This document shows positions 31,174 through 54,971 of a DNA stretch of 64,000 nucleotides, in pieces. The notes under the pieces are model-generated. The model saw nothing but the letters and a program-made list of their open reading frames with translations. It was not told the origin of the DNA and made no database searches. Position numbers and translations under genes: made by a program. Position 1 is the first letter of the stretch; every line of letters begins with the position of its first letter. Origin of the DNA: Schizochytrium sp. TIO01 (Eukaryota; Protista; Bigyra: Labyrinthulomycetes); assembly GCA_004764695.1 (NCBI GenBank), contig SMSO01000014.1, positions 243,648 through 307,647 of the forward strand, in the 5' to 3' direction.

Positions 31174-33775
31174 CAATGAGTTCCGTCGCAAATGTATGTG
31201 GTCTCTGAATGGAAAGTATATCATCAGTGGTTGACGTACTCAAGGACAAAACCAGACATCAGCCAGGGAAGCTTCATCATGTCAGGTTCTCACAAAAAGA
31301 ATGGATAACTAAATATCTGATCTAGTGTAGATCAGATTGTGGAGGAAGAAAAAGGAACGGGAGAAGGAAAGTCATTCCGTGAGTTGTCTCTTACTCGACC
31401 AAGGTAAATAGAAAACCCTTAGTTCTATCGTGGGTTTTATTTTATTGCACTATCTCTTTCTTTAATTAAAACAATAACATATTTTTCATAAAATTATAAA
31501 AATCAAAATCATAGAGAGGAGGTATTAGCGCCCCTCCAACCACTCCATTTCCCCACTGGCCCTTAGCTCCTCCTACTCTTTCTCCTGCCGTAGACAGTGG
31601 AAGAACAAAGCTCGACGGAAATGCAACTAAAATTTGTTGGAAAGCCTCTTTTATAAAATTTAAGAAATCACAACAGACGATATCATGCAGCGAGTGGGTG
31701 GTCTCTCCAAAGATGAACGAATGAATAAGCGTTTATGGAAACTAAATATCTAAGTGAGTCCCTTTCCTGCTAGAGCCGACCAAGTTTGTTCGCGGGTCGA
31801 GCCACCAAGGGCGGCGACGGCGGCGACGGCCAGGACAAAAGTCGCATTATGCTAATGGTCTGAGAGCATACGCACTGATGGAGACAGCAGCAAGGCAAGA
31901 GAATGTAGCCTGCAGAAACAAACCACTGTTATTATTATATTTATTATTATAAATGATGCAATTCTTATTACTGCCCTAACTTAAAACTAAAAAAAGTAAA
32001 ATAAAACTTTCTTCAACAACTCACAAAGAAACAGCAGAGGGGAAAGAAGGATGTAGGAACTTTCCCTCTCAGAGTCTGAGGGGAATTGAGAAAGTGTTGT
32101 TCCGAGTATGTGAGCTATTTCCTATTTTTTCACTCCCATAAGGATTACTTTAGTGTTCCCCATCGGAGGCTAACAATTTTGTGTTTGCAGCTGGTTAGCC
32201 TAGTAAACTCTAAAAACATAAACATAAACATAAAAAACTTTCTGTTTTAAGAAATATTTAATAGAAAAAGCAAAATTAGCAAACCTTTTTTTTTTCTATA
32301 AAAATAAAGAAACAAATACTAATAATGATAATACCAGATTAAAAATTCGTCCTCATACGACGGGCTATGTCAATAACTATGACGGGTGCTTTGGACAATT
32401 GAGCGGTTGATGCACGACGATCGCCCCTTCTCCTTTTCGTCCGCTTCAACTTTCCGTCTACCCGACCATTCGTTTGCCTACACATCAATTAGCATCTGTG
32501 AGCTCATGTCCACATTCGTTCAATAATGTCATGTTTCCGCTTATTTCTTTGAATAAACAAAAAGTAGACAATTGAGGAGGCGAGCAAACAAAGAAACAGA
32601 CATACAAAGAGGAGAAACAAACACGCCACACAAGTCTCCTCCGCAGCAGCGCGAGCGGACAAGCAGACAGGCAGACGAGCGCTCAGCGCCGAGCGGAGAT
32701 CCCCTCGCAGAACAGTCATAGCACCCCTGAGTACGAAGTTGTGGTAGCTCCTCTGGCGGAGAAGAAGAAGGAAAGAGCACCCAGATCAACCATTCAGGCA
32801 TCTCTCCATCCATTCTCATCTGCCATCCACCTAGACGGGTAGACAAAGAAGCAGACAGACAGACAGCCAAGCGTGGGCGCCACCTGTGCACAGCTGCTCA
32901 GCCGTGTGCTGTTCTTTGCCAGAACGGAAACCCCTGATAGGCGACAGTGCTGGCTTAAGGGAGTGAACACTTGCCTTCTCCTCATCGAAGCGAAGAGTGT
33001 CCATAAGCAGCCTCTGTTTTAGTTGCCAAACACAGATACGAAAAGGGCGGCTAGTAAGGAAACCTAAAGCAAGCTGGCAGCAGTCAACCTTGGCGTGCCC
33101 GCTGCGAGCTGCTGAAGAAAGAGTTGAGCTACGCTGAGCTTCCCAAGCTGCCACCGGAAGCCTGTTACGGATACTTTGTTTGCTCCGTCGTTTGCTCCGT
33201 TGCGTCTTCTGTCTTTTCTTCTTTCTCGTTTGTTCATTCTTTCTTTTTATCGCTTCCTTTCCCCTTTCTCTTCCCCCTCCCACAGTCACTCTCCCTTTCT
33301 TTCTCCCCCTCTCTTTCTTTCTCCCTCAGAGATCAAAGTATCGCCCCTCTCTATCTCTCTCTCTCCCTCTCTCTCTCAAAAGATCGGTTATCTGTGGACT
33401 TCTATCTATTTTACATCTCTCTCAAGAGACGGTCCTTCGCGCCCACTCTCAACTCTAATCCTGGACCATAGCACAAGTCCTCCTTGAGATTCAACAGACC
33501 GCCTGAAACCAGTCTCGTCAAAGCCACAAAGGTACTAATAAGCACCATTCCACGCAACTCAGCAGAGGCGCCAGTGGCTCGGGCGCTGCAGGAAGGCAGT
33601 GGTTATCTGTGACTGCTACACAGTAAAGTGTAGAAGGCAGCTAGGGCCTTTTACTGCCTGGCTTTCCCACGACCTTAACAAAGGGCCAAACTCGAGATCA
33701 CCACGACCCACGACGAAGCTATAAGCGTCCTGGATACCTGAGCACCGCACCTGCGTGGCGGTAAGAAACTCAACC

Positions 33776-35461
33776 ATGGAAGAGGAGCAGCGCCTTGGCC
33801 CTCGCGAGAGGGCGACCGAAGAAGCTAGTGCCCACAGTGAAGGAATCGCGGGAGAGGTCAATTTAGACTCGAGCGAAAATGCCGAAAACTCGAGCCCAGC
33901 GACAGCAAGACAAGCGGCGAGGGCGAGAGCGAGAGAGGCAGCCTCGAGTGCTTCAGCGGAGCCTGTGATAAGAACAAGAAGGTCCAGGCGCACTCTGAAG
34001 AAGCACAAGAGATTTGACGATGAAGACCTGAGTGAACACGCGGTGCGGAAGAGGCAGGTCGAACAGCGCAGTGTAGCGCTCGAGTCCTCAGTGTCGATTG
34101 AACTTGTGAACCCAGCACTTATTGAACGACTCATGGAGCTGACGAGAGCTCGAGCTCTTGCGAAACTTGACGAAGACCTCGCGCAAGCCAAGGCAGAATT
34201 GAAAATGTACCGAAACGGCGACGGCGACGGCGAGGACGAAGATGATGAAGATGATGATGACGATGAAGATGAAGATGAAGATGCTGATGAAGGCGATAAT
34301 AACAATGTCGATGACGCCAAAGAAATGGAAGAATATAGAGAAAATGAAAAACCATCCGCAAATAGCCTCGTTGAGGAGGGGAACGGGACAGCAGAAGAAC
34401 GAAAGCTGGAGGAGACCACGCAAGAAGTACCTACAGCCGCGGCACAAACCGATACAGGCTTCTCCAGACACGCAAATAGTGATGAGAACAAGGATGAAAC
34501 TCGAGGCTCTCAGGAAGCTACACCGCAACAAGATCAGCTCCAAGGGAGAGAGCAAGAGCACGAAGATTCTACACCGTCAGCTAGCTGTGACCCCCAAGGC
34601 CGTCCTGGAGGGCCACAGCAGCAGCTACAGCAAACGAAAATAATGCATTTGCGTATCGATACTTCTGTCTCTACGTCCGCCGGGGAAGCAAAGCCGGAAC
34701 AGAGGGAGGGTTTAATTCAAGCAACTAATCCAAACATTGACAAAAACAATCATGTAAAACTACAGAAACCAACACGAGAAACCAAGACAAACAGCGAGGC
34801 GCAAGATTTTATCAATAACAAACAACACGACAGCCATGACGGCAAAGGCGCCCAAGAGAAAGAGAAGGGGAACCTCGTTCCTGCCATAGTACAAAGCGCC
34901 TATGGACTAGGCCAGCAACTCAATAGTGAGAGGTGGACTCTTACCAGAGCTGGTGTCGATACTGAAAACTCGCCCCAGTCTTCTTTTCCCAATCAAGTGA
35001 TCAAAGACTTCCAAGCGCCGACAGCTGACACTCCTATGAACACCCCGGTTGCGCGCCCAGTCGAAGATGCTGTTGAGGCCGAGGACCATGAAGGTGATAA
35101 AATCATGGGTGAAAACGATGATTGTGTGTTTAATACAGGCAACAGTGCATCCGCACTTAAGATACTTCCTGCTACAGACTTAAGACAAAGTGCCGCAGCG
35201 AATAGAGAACTCGAGCCCATAGATCTGAAAAGTGATTTTGCTGACGAGCTGCAGGAATCTTTCGGCCTTCTTGATGATGAAGGGAATGAAAAAAATAACC
35301 ACTTCGCTGAACACATTGAAGATATCGATAATAATCTTGAAGACAACAACACCAATGCAAATGAACAAATTTCATATTCCATTGAGAAAGTAGTGTCTCC
35401 CCAAGTATTACCAGATGTCCAGATTTCAACCAAAAACAGCAGAAACCCCAAGTCCGTCTGA
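33776..35461 (+). CDS. Acidic low-complexity/coiled-coil protein; probably the N-terminal part of the downstream PHD-methyltransferase gene
   Basis: First ATG at 33776, in frame with the GTG-start ORF at 33755. NLS-like RTRRSRRTLKKHKR, coiled coil, poly-D/E tracts. It overlaps the next ORF in the +1 frame with the same composition. Confidence 0.75.
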   Translation: MEEEQRLGPRERATEEASAHSEGIAGEVNLDSSENAENSSPATARQAARARAREAASSASAEPVIRTRRSRRTLKKHKRFDDEDLSEHAVRKRQVEQRSVALESSVSIELVNPALIERLMELTRARALAKLDEDLAQAKAELKMYRNGDGDGEDEDDEDDDDDEDEDEDADEGDNNNVDDAKEMEEYRENEKPSANSLVEEGNGTAEERKLEETTQEVPTAAAQTDTGFSRHANSDENKDETRGSQEATPQQDQLQGREQEHEDSTPSASCDPQGRPGGPQQQLQQTKIMHLRIDTSVSTSAGEAKPEQREGLIQATNPNIDKNNHVKLQKPTRETKTNSEAQDFINNKQHDSHDGKGAQEKEKGNLVPAIVQSAYGLGQQLNSERWTLTRAGVDTENSPQSSFPNQVIKDFQAPTADTPMNTPVARPVEDAVEAEDHEGDKIMGENDDCVFNTGNSASALKILPATDLRQSAAANRELEPIDLKSDFADELQESFGLLDDEGNEKNNHFAEHIEDIDNNLEDNNTNANEQISYSIEKVVSPQVLPDVQISTKNSRNPKSV

Positions 35462-38400
35462 GATATTACCAAGGAAAGTAGAAACAGATGAAACAAAGTC
35501 ATGCAACGAGAAGCTTAGCGTCCAGGGGGTAGATGTTCAATCTGGTGAGATTCTGAAAACTCAGTCTAATGCATTTACCCAGCCAACACCCACAACTCAT
35601 GCTACAGGTCAAATCTCGTCAGCGCATGGAACGTCAGGCGATGATGCAGATCACGCAGATAAAGAAAGCAGACAACAAAAGCAGGCATTGCCTCCTTCTC
35701 CTGTTTCCAACGTACATGTAAGCTCTTCTCCCTCCTTTTCATTTGAACAAGGTGTTAATGTACCATGCATTCAATCAACGTCGGAACATGGCGAGGGCAT
35801 ATGGGAGCAACAACAACCAGAACAGTCGGCTGAAAGGAGCACTTCAAGCCATAGTGATACCCTGTTCCTATCTCAAGTCCACCAGAATGAGAATGGGAGA
35901 GCAGGCAGTAGTACGCCTGGCCCTCAAGGCCTGTCCTCCGATCAGAATTTGCTTTCCTCCTTAACGATGGAAAAAAATCAGCATTCCTTCCTGGGACAAC
36001 CTCACAATGCTGTCCAAGAACAGGGTACGGTGGGCAAGGAGGGCAATGGTCATTGTGGTGTAAACCTTGAAGTCAATCATCAAGCCAATCACGAGGAAGA
36101 TAATGGCGACGATGATGATGGTGATGATGGTGATGATGGTGATGATGGCGATGATGGCAATGATGGCGATGATGGCGATGGTGATGATGGCGATGACGAA
36201 GGAGAGGATGAAGAGCAGTACGAAGACGAAGGGGAAGACGACGAGGAGGAAGGAGGCGAACAAGGATACAATGAAGGTGAGAGCGAGGAAGATGACGAAG
36301 ACAATCCATCAAGTCCTTCAAAGAGAGTCAAAAGATCAGAATCGGAAAATGGCTGCGAAGTCGACAGTACATCTGCACCTATTCGACCAATGCTCAAGCG
36401 AGCACCTCGGAAGTCTGGTGTCGTTCTACCACCGCGTCATAAATCAGTCTTTCGGAAAATGTCTAAAGATCGACGAAAAGCAAAGAAACAGCTCTTGAAA
36501 AACGCCGCTGCGCGTGCTGTAAGGCAAAACACCCGCCAGCAACCTAAGCAAACAGGCAAGACACCGCAGCCAGATAGCACGCAGGTTCAATCAGCATCAT
36601 TAGCAACAATGCATTCAGTACCTAACTCCCTACAGATTCCCGAACTTCAGTACACAGGAGTTGTCACCACCCCATTGCCAATGCAGGGTGCGGGGTTAAG
36701 CCCGATAGTAATGCCAGCGCCTCCCCAAAGCAAAGCAACATCAAGAGCTGGAGCTAATAAGATAAATAAGCAAAAGGTTCGATCTAAAACCTCGACCACA
36801 TCATCCCAACAAAGTGAGATATCCTCTGATGCAGATTCAAAGCGTATGCTCATGAATGAAGAAGCAGAAATACGCATTAAACGTGTTCTGAAACGAAAGA
36901 AAGCAATTCAAGTCATTGAGCATCTTCATATCCCAAAGGGCACCCAATGTCGCGTTCGTTGGTCAGTGACATGGCAGATTAAGGATTCGCGGACCCTTTC
37001 TTGGCTCAAATCATGGGAGGATAACGAAGAGGATGAGAAGGAGGAGGAGGAAGAAGTAGAAGAAGACGCTAGAGAAGAACCGCCTGTCTGCCAGGATAAC
37101 AACAGCATTGATGTGAACGTCAAAAATACAGACGAAAAGAAAGATAATGAAGCAGGGAAAACAAGCCAAGGCGGCCAGGCGACTTCGCAGTCCTCATCAA
37201 TAGCGAATGGATCTCGAGTGGCAAGCACGGAGGGCAGAAATGGATCTTTGAACCCAGTGAGTGCTACATCTGCACAGGTCTATCAAGAAGCATGTATGTC
37301 GCATGCTGCTGAAACGGTCGATTTAGCAGGCTCCACAAACCCGACAAGCTCCCCAATTCACGGCGTACATGATGGTGACGCCCCAGGGGCATCAACTTCA
37401 AATAACAGCCAAAATGAAGCAACCTCAGAACCAAACAAAAAAAGGAGTGTGCGCGTCACACTTACAGGTGATGGAGTACGATTGTGCCGTGCAACGAATC
37501 TTGGTCTTACGAAGCAGCGTGATTTTTATGCACTTCTTGTGCAAGGCGAGCGCGCGAAAAAGGAGCATTTGTATGATATTTGTGCAGAGTTAAAAGGAGA
37601 CCGTAATGAAGTCATGGTTGACAATGTGGTTATTAATGGAATCGAAGCCAAGCGTATTAGTGGGGTTCTTGATTGGACAATTCCCCAGTGGCTATCCCCT
37701 GGCGTCTACAAGTTAGAAATTGGAAGTCGGTCTACTAATGTGTGCTGTACCACTGAGTCTTTCCGCGTTACAGAGGCCTTTGGCATGCTCGACTATACTA
37801 CTGTTGGCGTCTGGTGCCTTTGTGAAAGTGTGCAGGCCTCTGAAGCTGTGGATAAAGGTAAAGTATGGGTTTCCTGTTCGACTTGCCATTCTTGGCAACA
37901 CTGGTGCTGTTACGAGCGTATTCCTGGGAATGAAAAGTTTAATAACGAACTCGGGTTCATTGGTCACAATCAGCATGATCCAATTCCCCACAACGACACG
38001 ACGTTTACATGTTGGTCGTGCTTCAATTACAGGTCCGTAGATCGTTTGAAGCTTCCGACCCCGATACGCTCAGAAGAAGAATATGCCTCATTGGTGAAAG
38101 AACTTGAGAAGGATCGTCTTCAGAGAATGATTCGCATGTTCAATAAAGCAAGTGGTGGATATTCGCGCCGAAACTTTGACCGCTTCGGTCGTGAGATCAC
38201 CGTCAAACGTCTCTACTGTACTCCAAATCATGCAGTGTGCTTCATCGGCACTCTCCTTGACAAAATTTTCAACTTCGGTATTGCTGGGCTGAATGACTTT
38301 GTACACACAGGCGCTCTGATGCCTTCAAATCCAGCGCCTGTAGCGCCTCATCCTATCAAGTGTGCAGACCTCGGCGCTGGCGTTGGCGCACTCACTTCGA

Positions 38401-38861
38401 TTCTCCCTGCAGGTTCAGTTAGCATTGAGATTGAGAAAGACAGGTTTCTCAAGGGATCTAAGCGGTATCGTGAGAGCAAATGGATTAATGGCGATGTTCT
38501 GGACCCTTCAATTCATGGTCCTTTCTTCAAGCGTTTTGATCTTATTATAGCCAATCCTGATTTTGAAGTCGCGCTCCCCTTCCTCTGCGCTGCATTGTAC
38601 ATGCTACGCGATCATGAGGATGCGCGCATTCTTTTCCTTCTCCCTAGCGACTATTTTGAAGCGAGCCCGCTTAGAAGTCGCTGTTTTAAGCTTCTGCCTG
38701 TTGTTGTGGAAACAGAGTTCAAGCTCGGTCACTTGAACTACCTCGAAGACGATCCACTTGCGCAAAAGCTCACGGTAGATTCACTTTTTGTTATCCGCCG
38801 AGGAAGGCTGAACAAATTTGTCCATACTGTAGTCAACGCTCGCCTGGGTGGCATGCTCTAG
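35415..38861 (+). CDS. PHD finger + C-terminal amino-(N6-adenine/N4-cytosine) methyltransferase-like protein
   Basis: 1148 aa. C4HC3 PHD (CLC...WVSCSTCHSWQHWCC...FTCWSC, 37815-38021). Rossmann MTase motifs in gamma-type order: YCTP, DLGAGVG, EIE, GD, FDLIIANPDF, ILFLLPSDYF (38214-38858). NLS-like basic clusters. Confidence 0.88.
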   Translation: MSRFQPKTAETPSPSEILPRKVETDETKSCNEKLSVQGVDVQSGEILKTQSNAFTQPTPTTHATGQISSAHGTSGDDADHADKESRQQKQALPPSPVSNVHVSSSPSFSFEQGVNVPCIQSTSEHGEGIWEQQQPEQSAERSTSSHSDTLFLSQVHQNENGRAGSSTPGPQGLSSDQNLLSSLTMEKNQHSFLGQPHNAVQEQGTVGKEGNGHCGVNLEVNHQANHEEDNGDDDDGDDGDDGDDGDDGNDGDDGDGDDGDDEGEDEEQYEDEGEDDEEEGGEQGYNEGESEEDDEDNPSSPSKRVKRSESENGCEVDSTSAPIRPMLKRAPRKSGVVLPPRHKSVFRKMSKDRRKAKKQLLKNAAARAVRQNTRQQPKQTGKTPQPDSTQVQSASLATMHSVPNSLQIPELQYTGVVTTPLPMQGAGLSPIVMPAPPQSKATSRAGANKINKQKVRSKTSTTSSQQSEISSDADSKRMLMNEEAEIRIKRVLKRKKAIQVIEHLHIPKGTQCRVRWSVTWQIKDSRTLSWLKSWEDNEEDEKEEEEEVEEDAREEPPVCQDNNSIDVNVKNTDEKKDNEAGKTSQGGQATSQSSSIANGSRVASTEGRNGSLNPVSATSAQVYQEACMSHAAETVDLAGSTNPTSSPIHGVHDGDAPGASTSNNSQNEATSEPNKKRSVRVTLTGDGVRLCRATNLGLTKQRDFYALLVQGERAKKEHLYDICAELKGDRNEVMVDNVVINGIEAKRISGVLDWTIPQWLSPGVYKLEIGSRSTNVCCTTESFRVTEAFGMLDYTTVGVWCLCESVQASEAVDKGKVWVSCSTCHSWQHWCCYERIPGNEKFNNELGFIGHNQHDPIPHNDTTFTCWSCFNYRSVDRLKLPTPIRSEEEYASLVKELEKDRLQRMIRMFNKASGGYSRRNFDRFGREITVKRLYCTPNHAVCFIGTLLDKIFNFGIAGLNDFVHTGALMPSNPAPVAPHPIKCADLGAGVGALTSILPAGSVSIEIEKDRFLKGSKRYRESKWINGDVLDPSIHGPFFKRFDLIIANPDFEVALPFLCAALYMLRDHEDARILFLLPSDYFEASPLRSRCFKLLPVVVETEFKLGHLNYLEDDPLAQKLTVDSLFVIRRGRLNKFVHTVVNARLGGML

Positions 38862-53230: not shown

Positions 53231-54971
53231 ATGAAGCTACTGTTCAGTTCACTTTTGAACAATATGGAACACTACTACCCAAGAAAGAGGCCTAAGTGGA
53301 CCAACAAAGTGGTTCAAATTACTGTGTTCCAAAGCGTGAATCGCCGCCGTCGCATGCGGCTGGCGCTGCCTCGGCAACTCTACAGTACCCTCGCCGTTCA
53401 CAGGGCACCCTCAAAGCTCTGCATACCCCCTTTGGCGTGCCTTCATATTTACTTCGATCTGGACAAACCGTGGATCGGCCGAAGATTGCTCTCGAGCGTG
53501 ACCCAGACGGGTGGTTTTGACAAGACCAGAATACTTGTTGGTGGAAAGGGCATCATGACAGACTCTGAAGCGTTCGCATCTGATGCGCCAGGATGGCGCC
53601 AAAAGGCATCCGAAACGGCCCCCGGAGCCAAGCTTGAAGACACGGAGGAGCTCGGCCCGATTTGCTACCGCTGCAAAGGCTCAAAGGAAACCCTTAAAAA
53701 GGTCCTCGTAGAGGCCAAAAGTGCGGACGATAACAGCGAAGATGCAACTGCTGGCGATGATAAAAATGAGGATCAAACCGAAGATGTTAAGGAAAGCAAT
53801 GGAGACGAGCAGAAGAAGAAAAAGAAGAAGATGAAGAAGGAGCTCATTAAGGTCACATGCCCTATCTGCAATGGACTTGGTCGTATCAAGAAGAAGCGCA
53901 AGGAGGTTCTCCACGCGACCAAGGCGGGCAAGGCCAGCTCTCGCAAGCGTAAGATTCCTGAAGGGTGGGTTGTTCCTGGACCTCAAGCAAAGTAAGTTTA
54001 TTTCACACAGACGGCATTCGCCCCTGAACGCAGGAACACATCAAATAAAGAAACCATCCCAAAAGACTAACAAAGATACGTTTCATAACTTGCGCACACT
54101 TGTACAAATATGAAACAGAGGAGGCGTCGAGGCTGAAATGGGCGAGGAGATTTGTGCTTTACTCGGCCATTGGCGAATTTTCCAGCGTATCGGTGGTCAC
54201 CGCTGGTCCACTGACGATCTCGTGACCGCCTGGGTGGCAGGTCGTGCATGGAAAGACGCCAAGCCCGGCCGTACTGACGAGCCTGCATACTGTCTGGATC
54301 TTGGATGTGGTATCGGATCAGTTCTCATGATGGTTGCCTGGCAGTTCAACCAAGCCAAATGTCTAGGTGTAGAGGCGCAGGTCAGAAGTGCAACCATGGC
54401 TCGCCGCTCACTCGAATACAATGGATGCACAGACCGCTGCAAGGTTGTTCAGGGAGATATCCGGGAGTACGCGGATTTTGCCGAGGCTGCTCCAGATGGA
54501 AAATTTGATCTCGTAACTGGAACCCCTCCCTATTTCCCCGTGAACTACTCCGCAGATACAGGTGTCGCGACCCCGGGTCTCGGTGGACTTCCCTCTTGTG
54601 AACAATCTGCTCCTGCTCGTTACGAGTTTCGTGGTGGTGTAGAGGCATACTGTGCCGCAGCACGCCCACGTCTTCGGTCTCGTGAGTCTCGTTTCGTTGT
54701 TTGCGAGGGTCTTCTTGGCGAAAATCACTCTCGTGTCATCAATGGTGCTCGTGAGAACGGCCTTGAGGTTTTGAAAAAGGTAGCCGTCCACGGCCGCGAT
54801 GACAAGCCTGTGCTATTTGCAGTTTATGTCATGCGTCTTGCCGAACCTGACGCTGACCCTGCTGACGCTGCAAAGTCCATGGTAGAAGAGACTCTGATCA
54901 TTCGCCACAAAGGTGGCAAACGCTCCGACGCATATGTATCTCTTATGGCCGACCTTGGCATCCCGCCCTAA
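53231..54971 (+). CDS. Two-exon DnaJ-type zinc-finger + TrmN6/YfiC-like SAM-dependent adenine-N6 methyltransferase
   Basis: Intron 53992-54118 (AA|GTAAGT...GACTAAC...AACAG|A) fuses the two ORFs in frame (PGPQAK-GGVEAEMGEE). CYRCKG...CPICNGLG; FQRIGGHRWSTDD, LDLGCGIG, VEAQ, GDIR, FDLVTGTPPYF, ARYE. Start uncertain (ATG 53231, 53354 or 53555). Confidence 0.85.

Follow-up and report, generated by a model that had tools for sequence, protein, structure and literature searches.

Chromatin readers fused to amino-methyltransferases of prokaryotic origin are already known, from the clades described by Iyer et al. (2016), from plant EDM2 and from the bdelloid N4CMT. Here we describe such a fusion from Schizochytrium sp. 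TIO01, in a 64,000-nucleotide stretch of contig SMSO01000014.1 (the window; all coordinates are window positions, and all features of the gene are on the + strand). The gene occupies 33776–38861, and its C-terminal part encodes a probable Ig-like domain, a PHD finger and a compact methyltransferase, in which the NPPF of motif IV is replaced by NPDF. Judged from its sequences, the module is a conserved eukaryotic family that has no curated model, with a prophage-type ancestry and a transposon-borne sister group. It is most likely to act by methylating an exocyclic amino group in a chromatin-targeted manner. An earlier, sequence-only reading of this DNA had proposed more specifically a histone-guided writer of N6-methyladenine (6mA) of prokaryotic origin. 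This is plausible as a whole: the fusion and the prokaryote/phage type of the enzyme are borne out, while the alternative product N4-methylcytosine (4mC), and the idea that the order of motifs is exclusive to DNA enzymes, are not.

Among the described enzymes, M.TaqI and EcoKI HsdM (gamma-class, ‘Group-2’ of Iyer, Zhang & Aravind 2016) share with the window protein the Rossmann fold, the order of motifs, an N-terminal helix bearing a Thr-Pro (TP) pair, and the Asn and aromatic residue of motif IV, with structural Z scores of 15–16 extending to the end of the domain. They differ in that the window protein has neither a target-recognition domain nor a specificity subunit, has NPDF rather than NPP[YF], and carries its methyltransferase fused to a PHD finger within a 1,700-aa eukaryotic protein; the likeness is known from fold and sequence. 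The N-terminal TP helix is also shared by RNA enzymes of the METTL5 type. The ~200-aa methyltransferases of cyanobacterial (pro)phages (PHROG 799/3820; Acaryochloris phage A-HIS1) are homologous to the window domain over its entire length, and share with it the TP, Gly-loop, motif IV, LLP.D.F and C-terminal hairpin motifs. However, they are stand-alone proteins, with DDWETP and NPPF motifs, and are encoded among genes for RecT, single-stranded-DNA-binding protein (SSB), DUF5131 and HNH proteins.

Of the systems connected with chromatin, one is the chlorophyte-type Dam clade, for which Iyer et al. (2016) predicted a coupling of histone reading with 6mA and an origin from phage or cyanobacterial enzymes (PMC4738411). 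Its Tudor/BMB-like domain and CW finger are also found 5′ of the PHD-methyltransferase part in our homologues P0003–P0007 and P0022, and it may be the same family as the window protein, the two being compared by description only. On the other hand, the clade was tied to DpnM-type enzymes and to chlorophytes (PMC4738411), and DpnM, Dam and MethyltransfD12 were never among the sequence or structure matches of the window domain. Plant EDM2 (PF26055 ‘ELP’ domain) has the same design, with atypical PHD fingers, acidic tracts, nuclear localization signals (NLSs) and an amino-methyltransferase-like domain (PMC7529245). It differs in acting on RNA processing at heterochromatin-containing genes, and no sequence relation to it was detected in the homologue searches, the sole link being a look-alike in the ESM Atlas (score 0.85). 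The DAM domains of DIRS and long terminal repeat (LTR) retrotransposons (DAM-LTR; bioRxiv 10.64898/2026.05.21.726589), and the bdelloid chromodomain protein N4CMT, place a prokaryote-derived amino-methyltransferase in a eukaryotic chromatin or transposon context, as is the case here. In that preprint, of May 2026, orphan DAM copies are treated as transposon remnants and no PHD-fused host family is mentioned. The window gene differs from these in being a single-copy host gene without reverse transcriptase (RT) or integrase and in having no Pfam Dam match, although the exact model used in the preprint is not stated there. The oomycete DAMT enzymes were rejected as kin, since they belong to a different family, PF10237 (PMC6211444).

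Relatives of the 369-aa module were collected with an exhaustive phmmer search of 1.84 billion representative sequences, which gave 151 proteins at E ≤ 1e-3, one of them a 99%-identical metagenome fragment. The grouping was based on motif and domain censuses together with a quick maximum-likelihood tree, which comprises 108 domains, is unrooted and has moderate supports (Shimodaira–Hasegawa-like approximate likelihood ratio test, SH-aLRT, 88–93). Three groups were distinguished. The first is eukaryotic and PHD-linked (32 tree rows). The same CxC..C..C..W.H..C finger is located just 5′ of the methyltransferase in 34 relatives overall, showing that the fusion of PHD and amino-methyltransferase is real and conserved. 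Ahead of the finger, members of this group have a conserved Ig-like segment; further domains seen in some of them are the CW finger, the Tudor/BMB-like domain and a second PHD, of canonical type. One member carries the EukProt identifier CFRG1341T1, a sign that the family extends beyond a single lineage. The N-terminal regions of P0003–P0007, P0013, P0022 and P0050 also contain a motif, [YF]E..R..N[IV]..N...L..LG, upstream of the Ig-PHD-methyltransferase module; it is not found in the window protein.

The second group is integrase-linked (28 tree rows), with NP[P/D/E/T/Q/S/I]F as motif IV. Fourteen of its members are C-terminal extensions of a Ty3/gypsy-type Pol, arranged as RT, RNase H, integrase, SH3 and methyltransferase. 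These Pol-linked members come from metagenomic/Logan sequences (P0038, P0039, P0052-54, P0058, P0063, P0069, P0073, P0088, P0115, P0119, P0138 and P0153). The transposon-borne relatives gave no Pfam Dam or MethyltransfD12 match at E ≤ 1, and may represent a second family of LTR-retrotransposon amino-methyltransferases, missed by the DAM-based screen of bioRxiv 10.64898/2026.05.21.726589.

The third group (38 tree rows, SH-aLRT 98) consists of the short, ~200-aa proteins with DDWETP and canonical NPPF. The members that were scanned find PHROGs with the annotation DNA methyltransferase (E values for phrog_799 as low as 1.6e-24), and one is 36% identical (E 5e-21) to a ‘putative DNA modification methylase’ of cyanophage A-HIS1. 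Relatives were found in cyanobacterial metagenome-assembled genomes with P0055 as query (44–47% identity); the contig search with P0067 as query gave no match. Two cyanobacterial loci (L003:5956–6609 and L004:5860–6588) adjoin genes for RecT, SSB, DUF5131, RRXRR-HNH and helix-turn-helix (HTH) proteins, and these neighbourhoods are prophage-like replication/recombination modules. Comparison of profiles with hhalign matched the PHD group to the short group at 99.9% (E 2e-33) over 176 columns. This is the whole of the short protein, so the eukaryotic domain corresponds to an entire stand-alone enzyme without a target-recognition domain. The match, together with the prophage-like neighbours, agrees with the suggestion made from the sequence that the methyltransferase is of prokaryote/phage type. 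In the tree the PHD group adjoins the prophage-type group, with the integrase-linked group farther away, and the prokaryotic rows all fall on one side of a branch. The tree is compatible with a single inter-domain transfer; it gives no direction for it and no order for the host-gene and transposon versions. A word-indexed homologue search with a 68-sequence profile returned the same family only, with no named relative and no EDM2.

The methyltransferase domain (38202–38858) is a compact class-I Rossmann amino-methyltransferase, as indicated by an AlphaFold2 (AF2) model, the structure search and hhalign. The motifs that had been picked out by eye are all present in the expected places. Motif X (LYCTP, 38211–38225, with YCTP itself at 38214–38225) is in the N-terminal helix, and follows the last Cys of the PHD finger by 64 residues, against the ~65 that had been estimated. 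The motif census gives motif I, the S-adenosylmethionine (SAM)-binding loop DLGAGVG, at 38367–38387. Motif II is the acidic residue ending strand 2 (38421–38435, with EIE at 38427–38435), and the motif III region is WINGDVL (38481–38501), with a nearly invariant Trp and an Asp that does not vary within the PHD group. Motif IV is IIANPDF (38544–38564), with Asp in place of the second Pro of NPPF, and the motif VI-like sequence FLLPSDYFEAS (38634–38666, with FLLPSDYF at 38634–38657), which forms strand 5 and the next loop, is kept in all three groups.

The AF2 model of the last 369 aa, made with a 75-sequence alignment, has a mean predicted local distance difference test (pLDDT) score of 89.4 and a predicted template modelling (pTM) score of 0.90, and in it the finger, the long helical linker and the Rossmann domain are predicted to form one rigid body. 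A structure search with residues 150–369 of the model gave Z scores of 17.7 for lmo1582, 17.2 for METTL5, 16.1 for HsdM, 16.0 for PH1948 and for BsaXI, 15.6 for M.TaqI, 15.3 for EcoKI M and 14.9 for CamA and for M.BseCI, as well as a match to HEMK2-TRMT112 (Z 13.6). The DNA enzymes align with the domain to its very C-terminus, and Foldseek was concordant. When the family profile was compared with PDB sequences, the matches were HemK, ErmC′, RsmC, EcoR124 HsdM, PH1948, M.TaqI and METTL5, with E values of 1e-8 to 1e-5 and HemK the best at 2.5e-8; the alignment with M.TaqI starts at its own motif X. On these comparisons, the modelled domain clearly belongs to the amino-methyltransferase superfamily, and within it to the M.TaqI/EcoKI-like group with an N-terminal TP helix. 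The M.TaqI/HsdM group was matched, in keeping with the sequence-only reading, but METTL5, HemK, Erm and RsmC were equally good matches. The order X-I-II-III-IV-VI had been taken as defining DNA methyltransferases; this does not hold, because METTL5, which acts on rRNA, and HemK, which acts on protein, fit just as well.

Standard domain models hardly recognize the protein. The two open reading frames (ORFs) of the gene, searched whole against Pfam and NCBIfam, gave no significant family, and the same is true of the family at large. There is a sub-threshold Pfam MTS match (E 0.04), the others, in Pfam/NCBIfam, being sub-threshold matches to RsmC and KsgA. The window domain had no Pfam Dam or MethyltransfD12 match at E ≤ 10; there was no MT-A70 match on the protein, which is not of the circularly permuted DPPW type. 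Domain-based surveys will therefore have missed this family. The literature searched contained no description of an Ig-like/PHD/mini-methyltransferase family, and no paper in which NPDF and methyltransferase occur together.

Over 68–75 sequences there is little or no variation in the Gly loop, the strand-2 acid, the motif III Trp, LLP.D.F, the C-terminal hairpin (GH/GR..Y and D(S/A).F), or the Asn, first Pro and Phe of motif IV. In alignment A2 (75 sequences), G210, G212 and the motif II residue E226 are invariant and P158 of motif X is nearly so, while in alignment A3 the TP of motif X is seen as a nearly invariant T307 and an invariant P308. Motifs I and IV are kept in the orthologues, in keeping with the sequence-only reading. 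The contig of another strain has 0 differences across the PHD-methyltransferase part, against 13 in the 1.8 kb upstream, which is consistent with stronger constraint on the module.

The NPDF sequence is present in nearly all members of the PHD group, across 30–45% identity, with NPAF, NADF and NPPF as rare variants. In the wider family the third position of motif IV can be D, E, A, Q, T, S, I or P. The change from Pro to Asp, which had been suspected of altering or abolishing catalysis, is not a one-off loss of function but the norm in the PHD group; because it is fixed over such a range of identity, the Asp is selected rather than a product of decay. In amino-methyltransferases, motif IV holds the target amino group through its first residue and through the backbone carbonyl that lies between its two prolines, while its aromatic residue provides stacking for the base (PMC4738411). 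An NPDF sequence could still provide the Asn side chain, the carbonyl between positions 2 and 3, and the aromatic stacking. The bdelloid enzyme N4CMT makes 4mC and has a Ser-type motif. Ser at the first position of motif IV is the hallmark of N4-cytosine enzymes (PMC4738411), and in the present family this position is Asn, invariant or nearly so, and never Ser. For this reason 4mC, which had been offered as a second possible product, is unlikely.

The PHD-type zinc finger (37803–38024) is of C4HC3 type, with a CxC first pair, as recognized from its ligands, the homologue alignment and Foldseek. The ligands are C801/C803 (37815–37823), C821..C824-H829-C832 (37875–37910) and C866..C869 (38010–38021), giving the pattern CxC-X17-CxxC-X4-H-xx-C-X33-CxxC. 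The corresponding columns of a 28-homologue alignment (C14, C16, C34, C37, H42, C45, C79 and C82) are invariant or nearly so, and the finger that had been read from the sequence at 37815–38021 is thus real and conserved. The same 28 homologues show two conserved Trp residues, one preceding the first Cys and one, invariant or nearly so, two positions ahead of the His; this pair suggests a methyl-lysine cage. Taken alone, the finger is only weakly matched by database models. Pfam PHD (PF00628) matches the window fragment at E 0.004 with 17.5 bits, which is under the 24-bit cut-off, and reaches E ≤ 1e-3 in 11 of the 58 long homologues, in some cases through an additional canonical PHD. Against PDB sequences the finger finds those of Spp1, PHF20, BPTF and TAF3 at E 0.3–2. 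When the isolated finger was modelled, the AF2 prediction was weak (pLDDT 64, compared to 76–93 in the context of the module), and nearly all of its 50 best Foldseek matches were PHD fingers, many of them readers of H3K4me2/3, each being individually non-significant (E 0.03–2). Co-folding of the PHD-methyltransferase with residues 2–41 of the genome's own histone H3 gave a score of 0.23 against a mark of 0.34, which speaks neither for nor against binding.

Two segments flank the finger. Preceding it is a probable Ig-like domain, consisting of an N-terminal strand segment (PKGTQCRVRWSVTWQ, 36933–36977) and a main part (37518–37784). It is recognized from alignment A1, in which P128, Y136, E139, F154 and G161 are invariant columns of the main part, and Pfam finds matches to the Ig-like Kre9_KNH in two homologues. 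In the window protein this domain is interrupted by a low-complexity, acidic and Ser/Thr-rich insert of ~180 aa (36978–37517), which is lacking in the compact homologues P0003–P0007. Following the finger is a conserved helix (LQRMIRMFNKASGGYSRR, 38118–38171; alignment A1), which joins PHD and methyltransferase and is part of the one rigid predicted body.

The gene product would be a nuclear, mostly disordered protein of ~1,700 aa, whose sole folded part is predicted to be the C-terminal Ig-like/PHD/mini-methyltransferase module. The methyltransferase domain is equivalent to the whole of a small prophage-type amino-methyltransferase, and retains all SAM-binding and catalytic positions except the second Pro of NPPF. 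We suggest that the PHD finger would dock the module on the tail of histone H3, that docking would place the enzyme at nearby nucleosomal or linker DNA, and that the enzyme, with little intrinsic sequence specificity, would then methylate the N6 amino group of adenine using SAM as the donor. In this scheme we infer the histone binding, the catalysis and the DNA substrate. The integrase-linked relatives also point to a DNA/chromatin setting. Histone-guided adenine N6 methylation of DNA, by a PHD-methyltransferase of prokaryotic origin, is put forward tentatively, as the foremost candidate function, which we regard as possible though short of probable.

A number of observations count against this proposal. 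The fold is of M.TaqI/HsdM/METTL5 type and does not separate DNA, RNA and protein substrates, and the superfamily signature [DNSH]PP[YFW] is not matched strictly, the window having N-P-D-F at 38553–38564. The protein contains no recognizable DNA-binding or target-recognition domain, ending 3–4 residues past the catalytic domain with only the Ig-like and PHD modules upstream. The short prokaryotic group corresponds to no NCBIfam family and its members are themselves uncharacterized, and a tblastn search of 50,697 phage genomes with the window methyltransferase gave no match. The DAM domains of retrotransposons, possibly another family, produced no 6mA in dam-deficient E. coli (bioRxiv 10.64898/2026.05.21.726589). 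Finally, in Aurantiochytrium and Creolimax AMT1-type 6mA is located at ApT beside H3K4me3 nucleosomes, and a paper that considers only MT-A70 enzymes ascribes the 6mA of such protists to AMT1 (PMC12695648). The present genome has one MT-A70 match (contig C31), besides two DNMT-type matches and canonical histone H3 genes. The MT-A70 gene would suit a lineage that uses 6mA, and with it the genome does not need the PHD-methyltransferase as its main 6mA writer.

The same fold and design could instead serve RNA. The protein would then be a chromatin-recruited, co-transcriptional RNA adenine methyltransferase or RNA-processing factor, like plant EDM2 or OsEDM2L. METTL5 and its archaeal homologue PH1948 are among the top structural matches (Z 17.2 and 16.0), and a plant cluster with PF26055 Mtase_EDM2 and PHD_NSD is among the top three look-alikes in the ESM Atlas, although its score of 0.85 is below the level that would make it more than a lead (166 shared features against a guide of 170). 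EDM2 itself has atypical PHD fingers, acidic stretches and a domain resembling N6-adenine methyltransferases (PMC7529245), and a passage of PMC9342612 citing Ma et al. 2021 ties OsEDM2L to m6A on the EAT1 transcript. However, no RNA-binding domain was found in the window protein, and no EDM2-like plant protein was recognized among the 151 relatives, which is a weak point because the library carries no names. An RNA substrate is in our opinion rather unlikely.

HemK2/N6AMT1 provides a precedent for an NPPY enzyme that acts on protein, and the module might likewise be a histone amino-methyltransferase, in which a rigidly held PHD feeds the tail to the active site and the Asp of NPDF handles a charged Lys, a Gln or an N-terminal amine. 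Such an arrangement would account for a module that is predicted as one body (pTM 0.90) and whose finger folds poorly outside it, for the lack of a nucleic-acid-binding domain, and for a Pro-to-Asp change that is fixed in the PHD-linked group and variable elsewhere; HemK is also the best PDB profile match, and HEMK2-TRMT112 a structural one. Against this, the third position of motif IV is tolerant in the wider family, and the nearest relatives match PHROGs annotated as DNA methyltransferase and have prophage-like neighbourhoods. Moreover, the conserved basic residues of the prophage-type enzymes have basic counterparts in the PHD group (GRVAY/GHLxY and GRQ/QKL in the hhalign alignment), which suggests the same mode of binding. 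A histone substrate is likewise rather unlikely.

The two ideas can be combined in a broader statement, that a prophage-derived NPDF methyltransferase has joined an Ig-like domain and a methyl-lysine-reading PHD to make an unrecognized chromatin writer, which is either a de novo adenine methylase coupling H3K4 methylation to 6mA, or a histone methyltransferase evolved from a DNA-modifying enzyme. In this joint form we find it doubtful. If true, the de novo methylase version would explain the co-localization of 6mA and H3K4me in protists that bear AMT1, and the Ty3/gypsy-integrase sister group would be a second family of transposon-borne amino-methyltransferases, invisible to Pfam.

A further alternative is that the module is catalytically silent, and binds SAM or (methylated) nucleic acid as a sensor, a reader or a methyltransferase partner, in the manner of the inactive MT-A70 paralogues. 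NPDF is after all non-canonical, transposon-borne DAM domains were inactive in E. coli (bioRxiv 10.64898/2026.05.21.726589), and the methyltransferase domains of DIRS1 were judged inactive by Iyer et al. (PMC4738411). Against this, the Gly loop, the acid of motif II, motif III, and the motif IV residues Asn, Pro and Phe are all strongly conserved over deep divergence, a pattern that a mere scaffold would not be expected to show, and this explanation is distinctly unlikely.

That the gene is decaying or a transposon remnant, its frameshift marking a pseudogene, is very improbable: there are overlapping ORFs in different frames, and relatives on retrotransposons, but the sequence has one A fewer, and a single ORF, in contigs of two other runs, all of the conserved module lies within ORF2, the gene is present in one copy and has no RT or integrase domain (domain searches of both ORFs), and the module is free of substitutions in another strain.

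Returning to histone-guided DNA methylation, its interest is that the robust 6mA of unicellular eukaryotes is at present put down to a single family, MT-A70/AMT1, and that the coincidence of H3K4me3 and 6mA is regarded as an open question (PMC12695648). A conserved host gene in which a histone-reader finger is fused to a prokaryote-type methyltransferase is a concrete candidate for coupling the two, or for making another mark on RNA or histones. The transposon-borne sister group also extends the recent picture of retroelements that carry adenine methyltransferases.

As assembled, the gene consists of two + strand ORFs in different frames, 33755–35461 (568 aa) and 35415–38861 (1,148 aa), which overlap by 47 bases. 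Within the overlap is a run of five A (A5, 35432–35436), at which the window has one base more than the contigs of two other public runs. These contigs are ~99% identical to the window, and their remaining length differences are multiples of three; they are of uncertain kind, RNA being only a guess. Removal of one A by script gave an uninterrupted ORF of 1,694 codons, starting with the ATG at 33776 and ending with the stop codon at 38861. The single span proposed from the sequence is therefore right in extent, but needs one A fewer than the assembly has. The continuity of the 1,694-aa joined protein was checked by script, and searches were run on the two ORF pieces separately. The extra A is either an assembly (homopolymer) error or a strain variant. 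If this assembly commonly has such extra bases, A/T runs may falsely break up other long genes as well.

All of the conserved parts are encoded by ORF2 alone. The N-terminal part of the protein (33776–35431) is acidic-rich, of low complexity, and has no domain that could be found. It is followed by acidic tracts rich in Asp, Gly and Glu (36093–36260) and by basic clusters at 36453 and 36879; the acidic tracts and NLS-like basic clusters mentioned in the earlier reading are thus both present.

The methyltransferase is single-copy in the assembly, which comprises 64.07 Mb in 37 contigs. Genes in the window are largely intron-free, and include one for a DH-PH RhoGEF; genes of this kind are not known from apicomplexans, and an apicomplexan origin of the DNA is unlikely. 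A separate 277-aa ORF at 54138–54971 (+) matches Methyltransf_25 (E 1e-8) and MTS (E 5e-7), and is unrelated to the PHD-methyltransferase gene. Elsewhere in the genome, full-length eukaryotic small-subunit ribosomal DNA (SSU rDNA) is present on at least 11 contigs (C4, C5, C7, C12, C35 and others), with several copies 4–105 kb from a contig end, and C33 contains a facing pair of copies separated by 27 kb. Such a layout resembles dispersed subtelomeric rDNA, possibly with joined chromosome ends, and recalls the subtelomeric rDNAs of Aurantiochytrium named in the title of Collier et al. 2023, as cited in PMC12695648.

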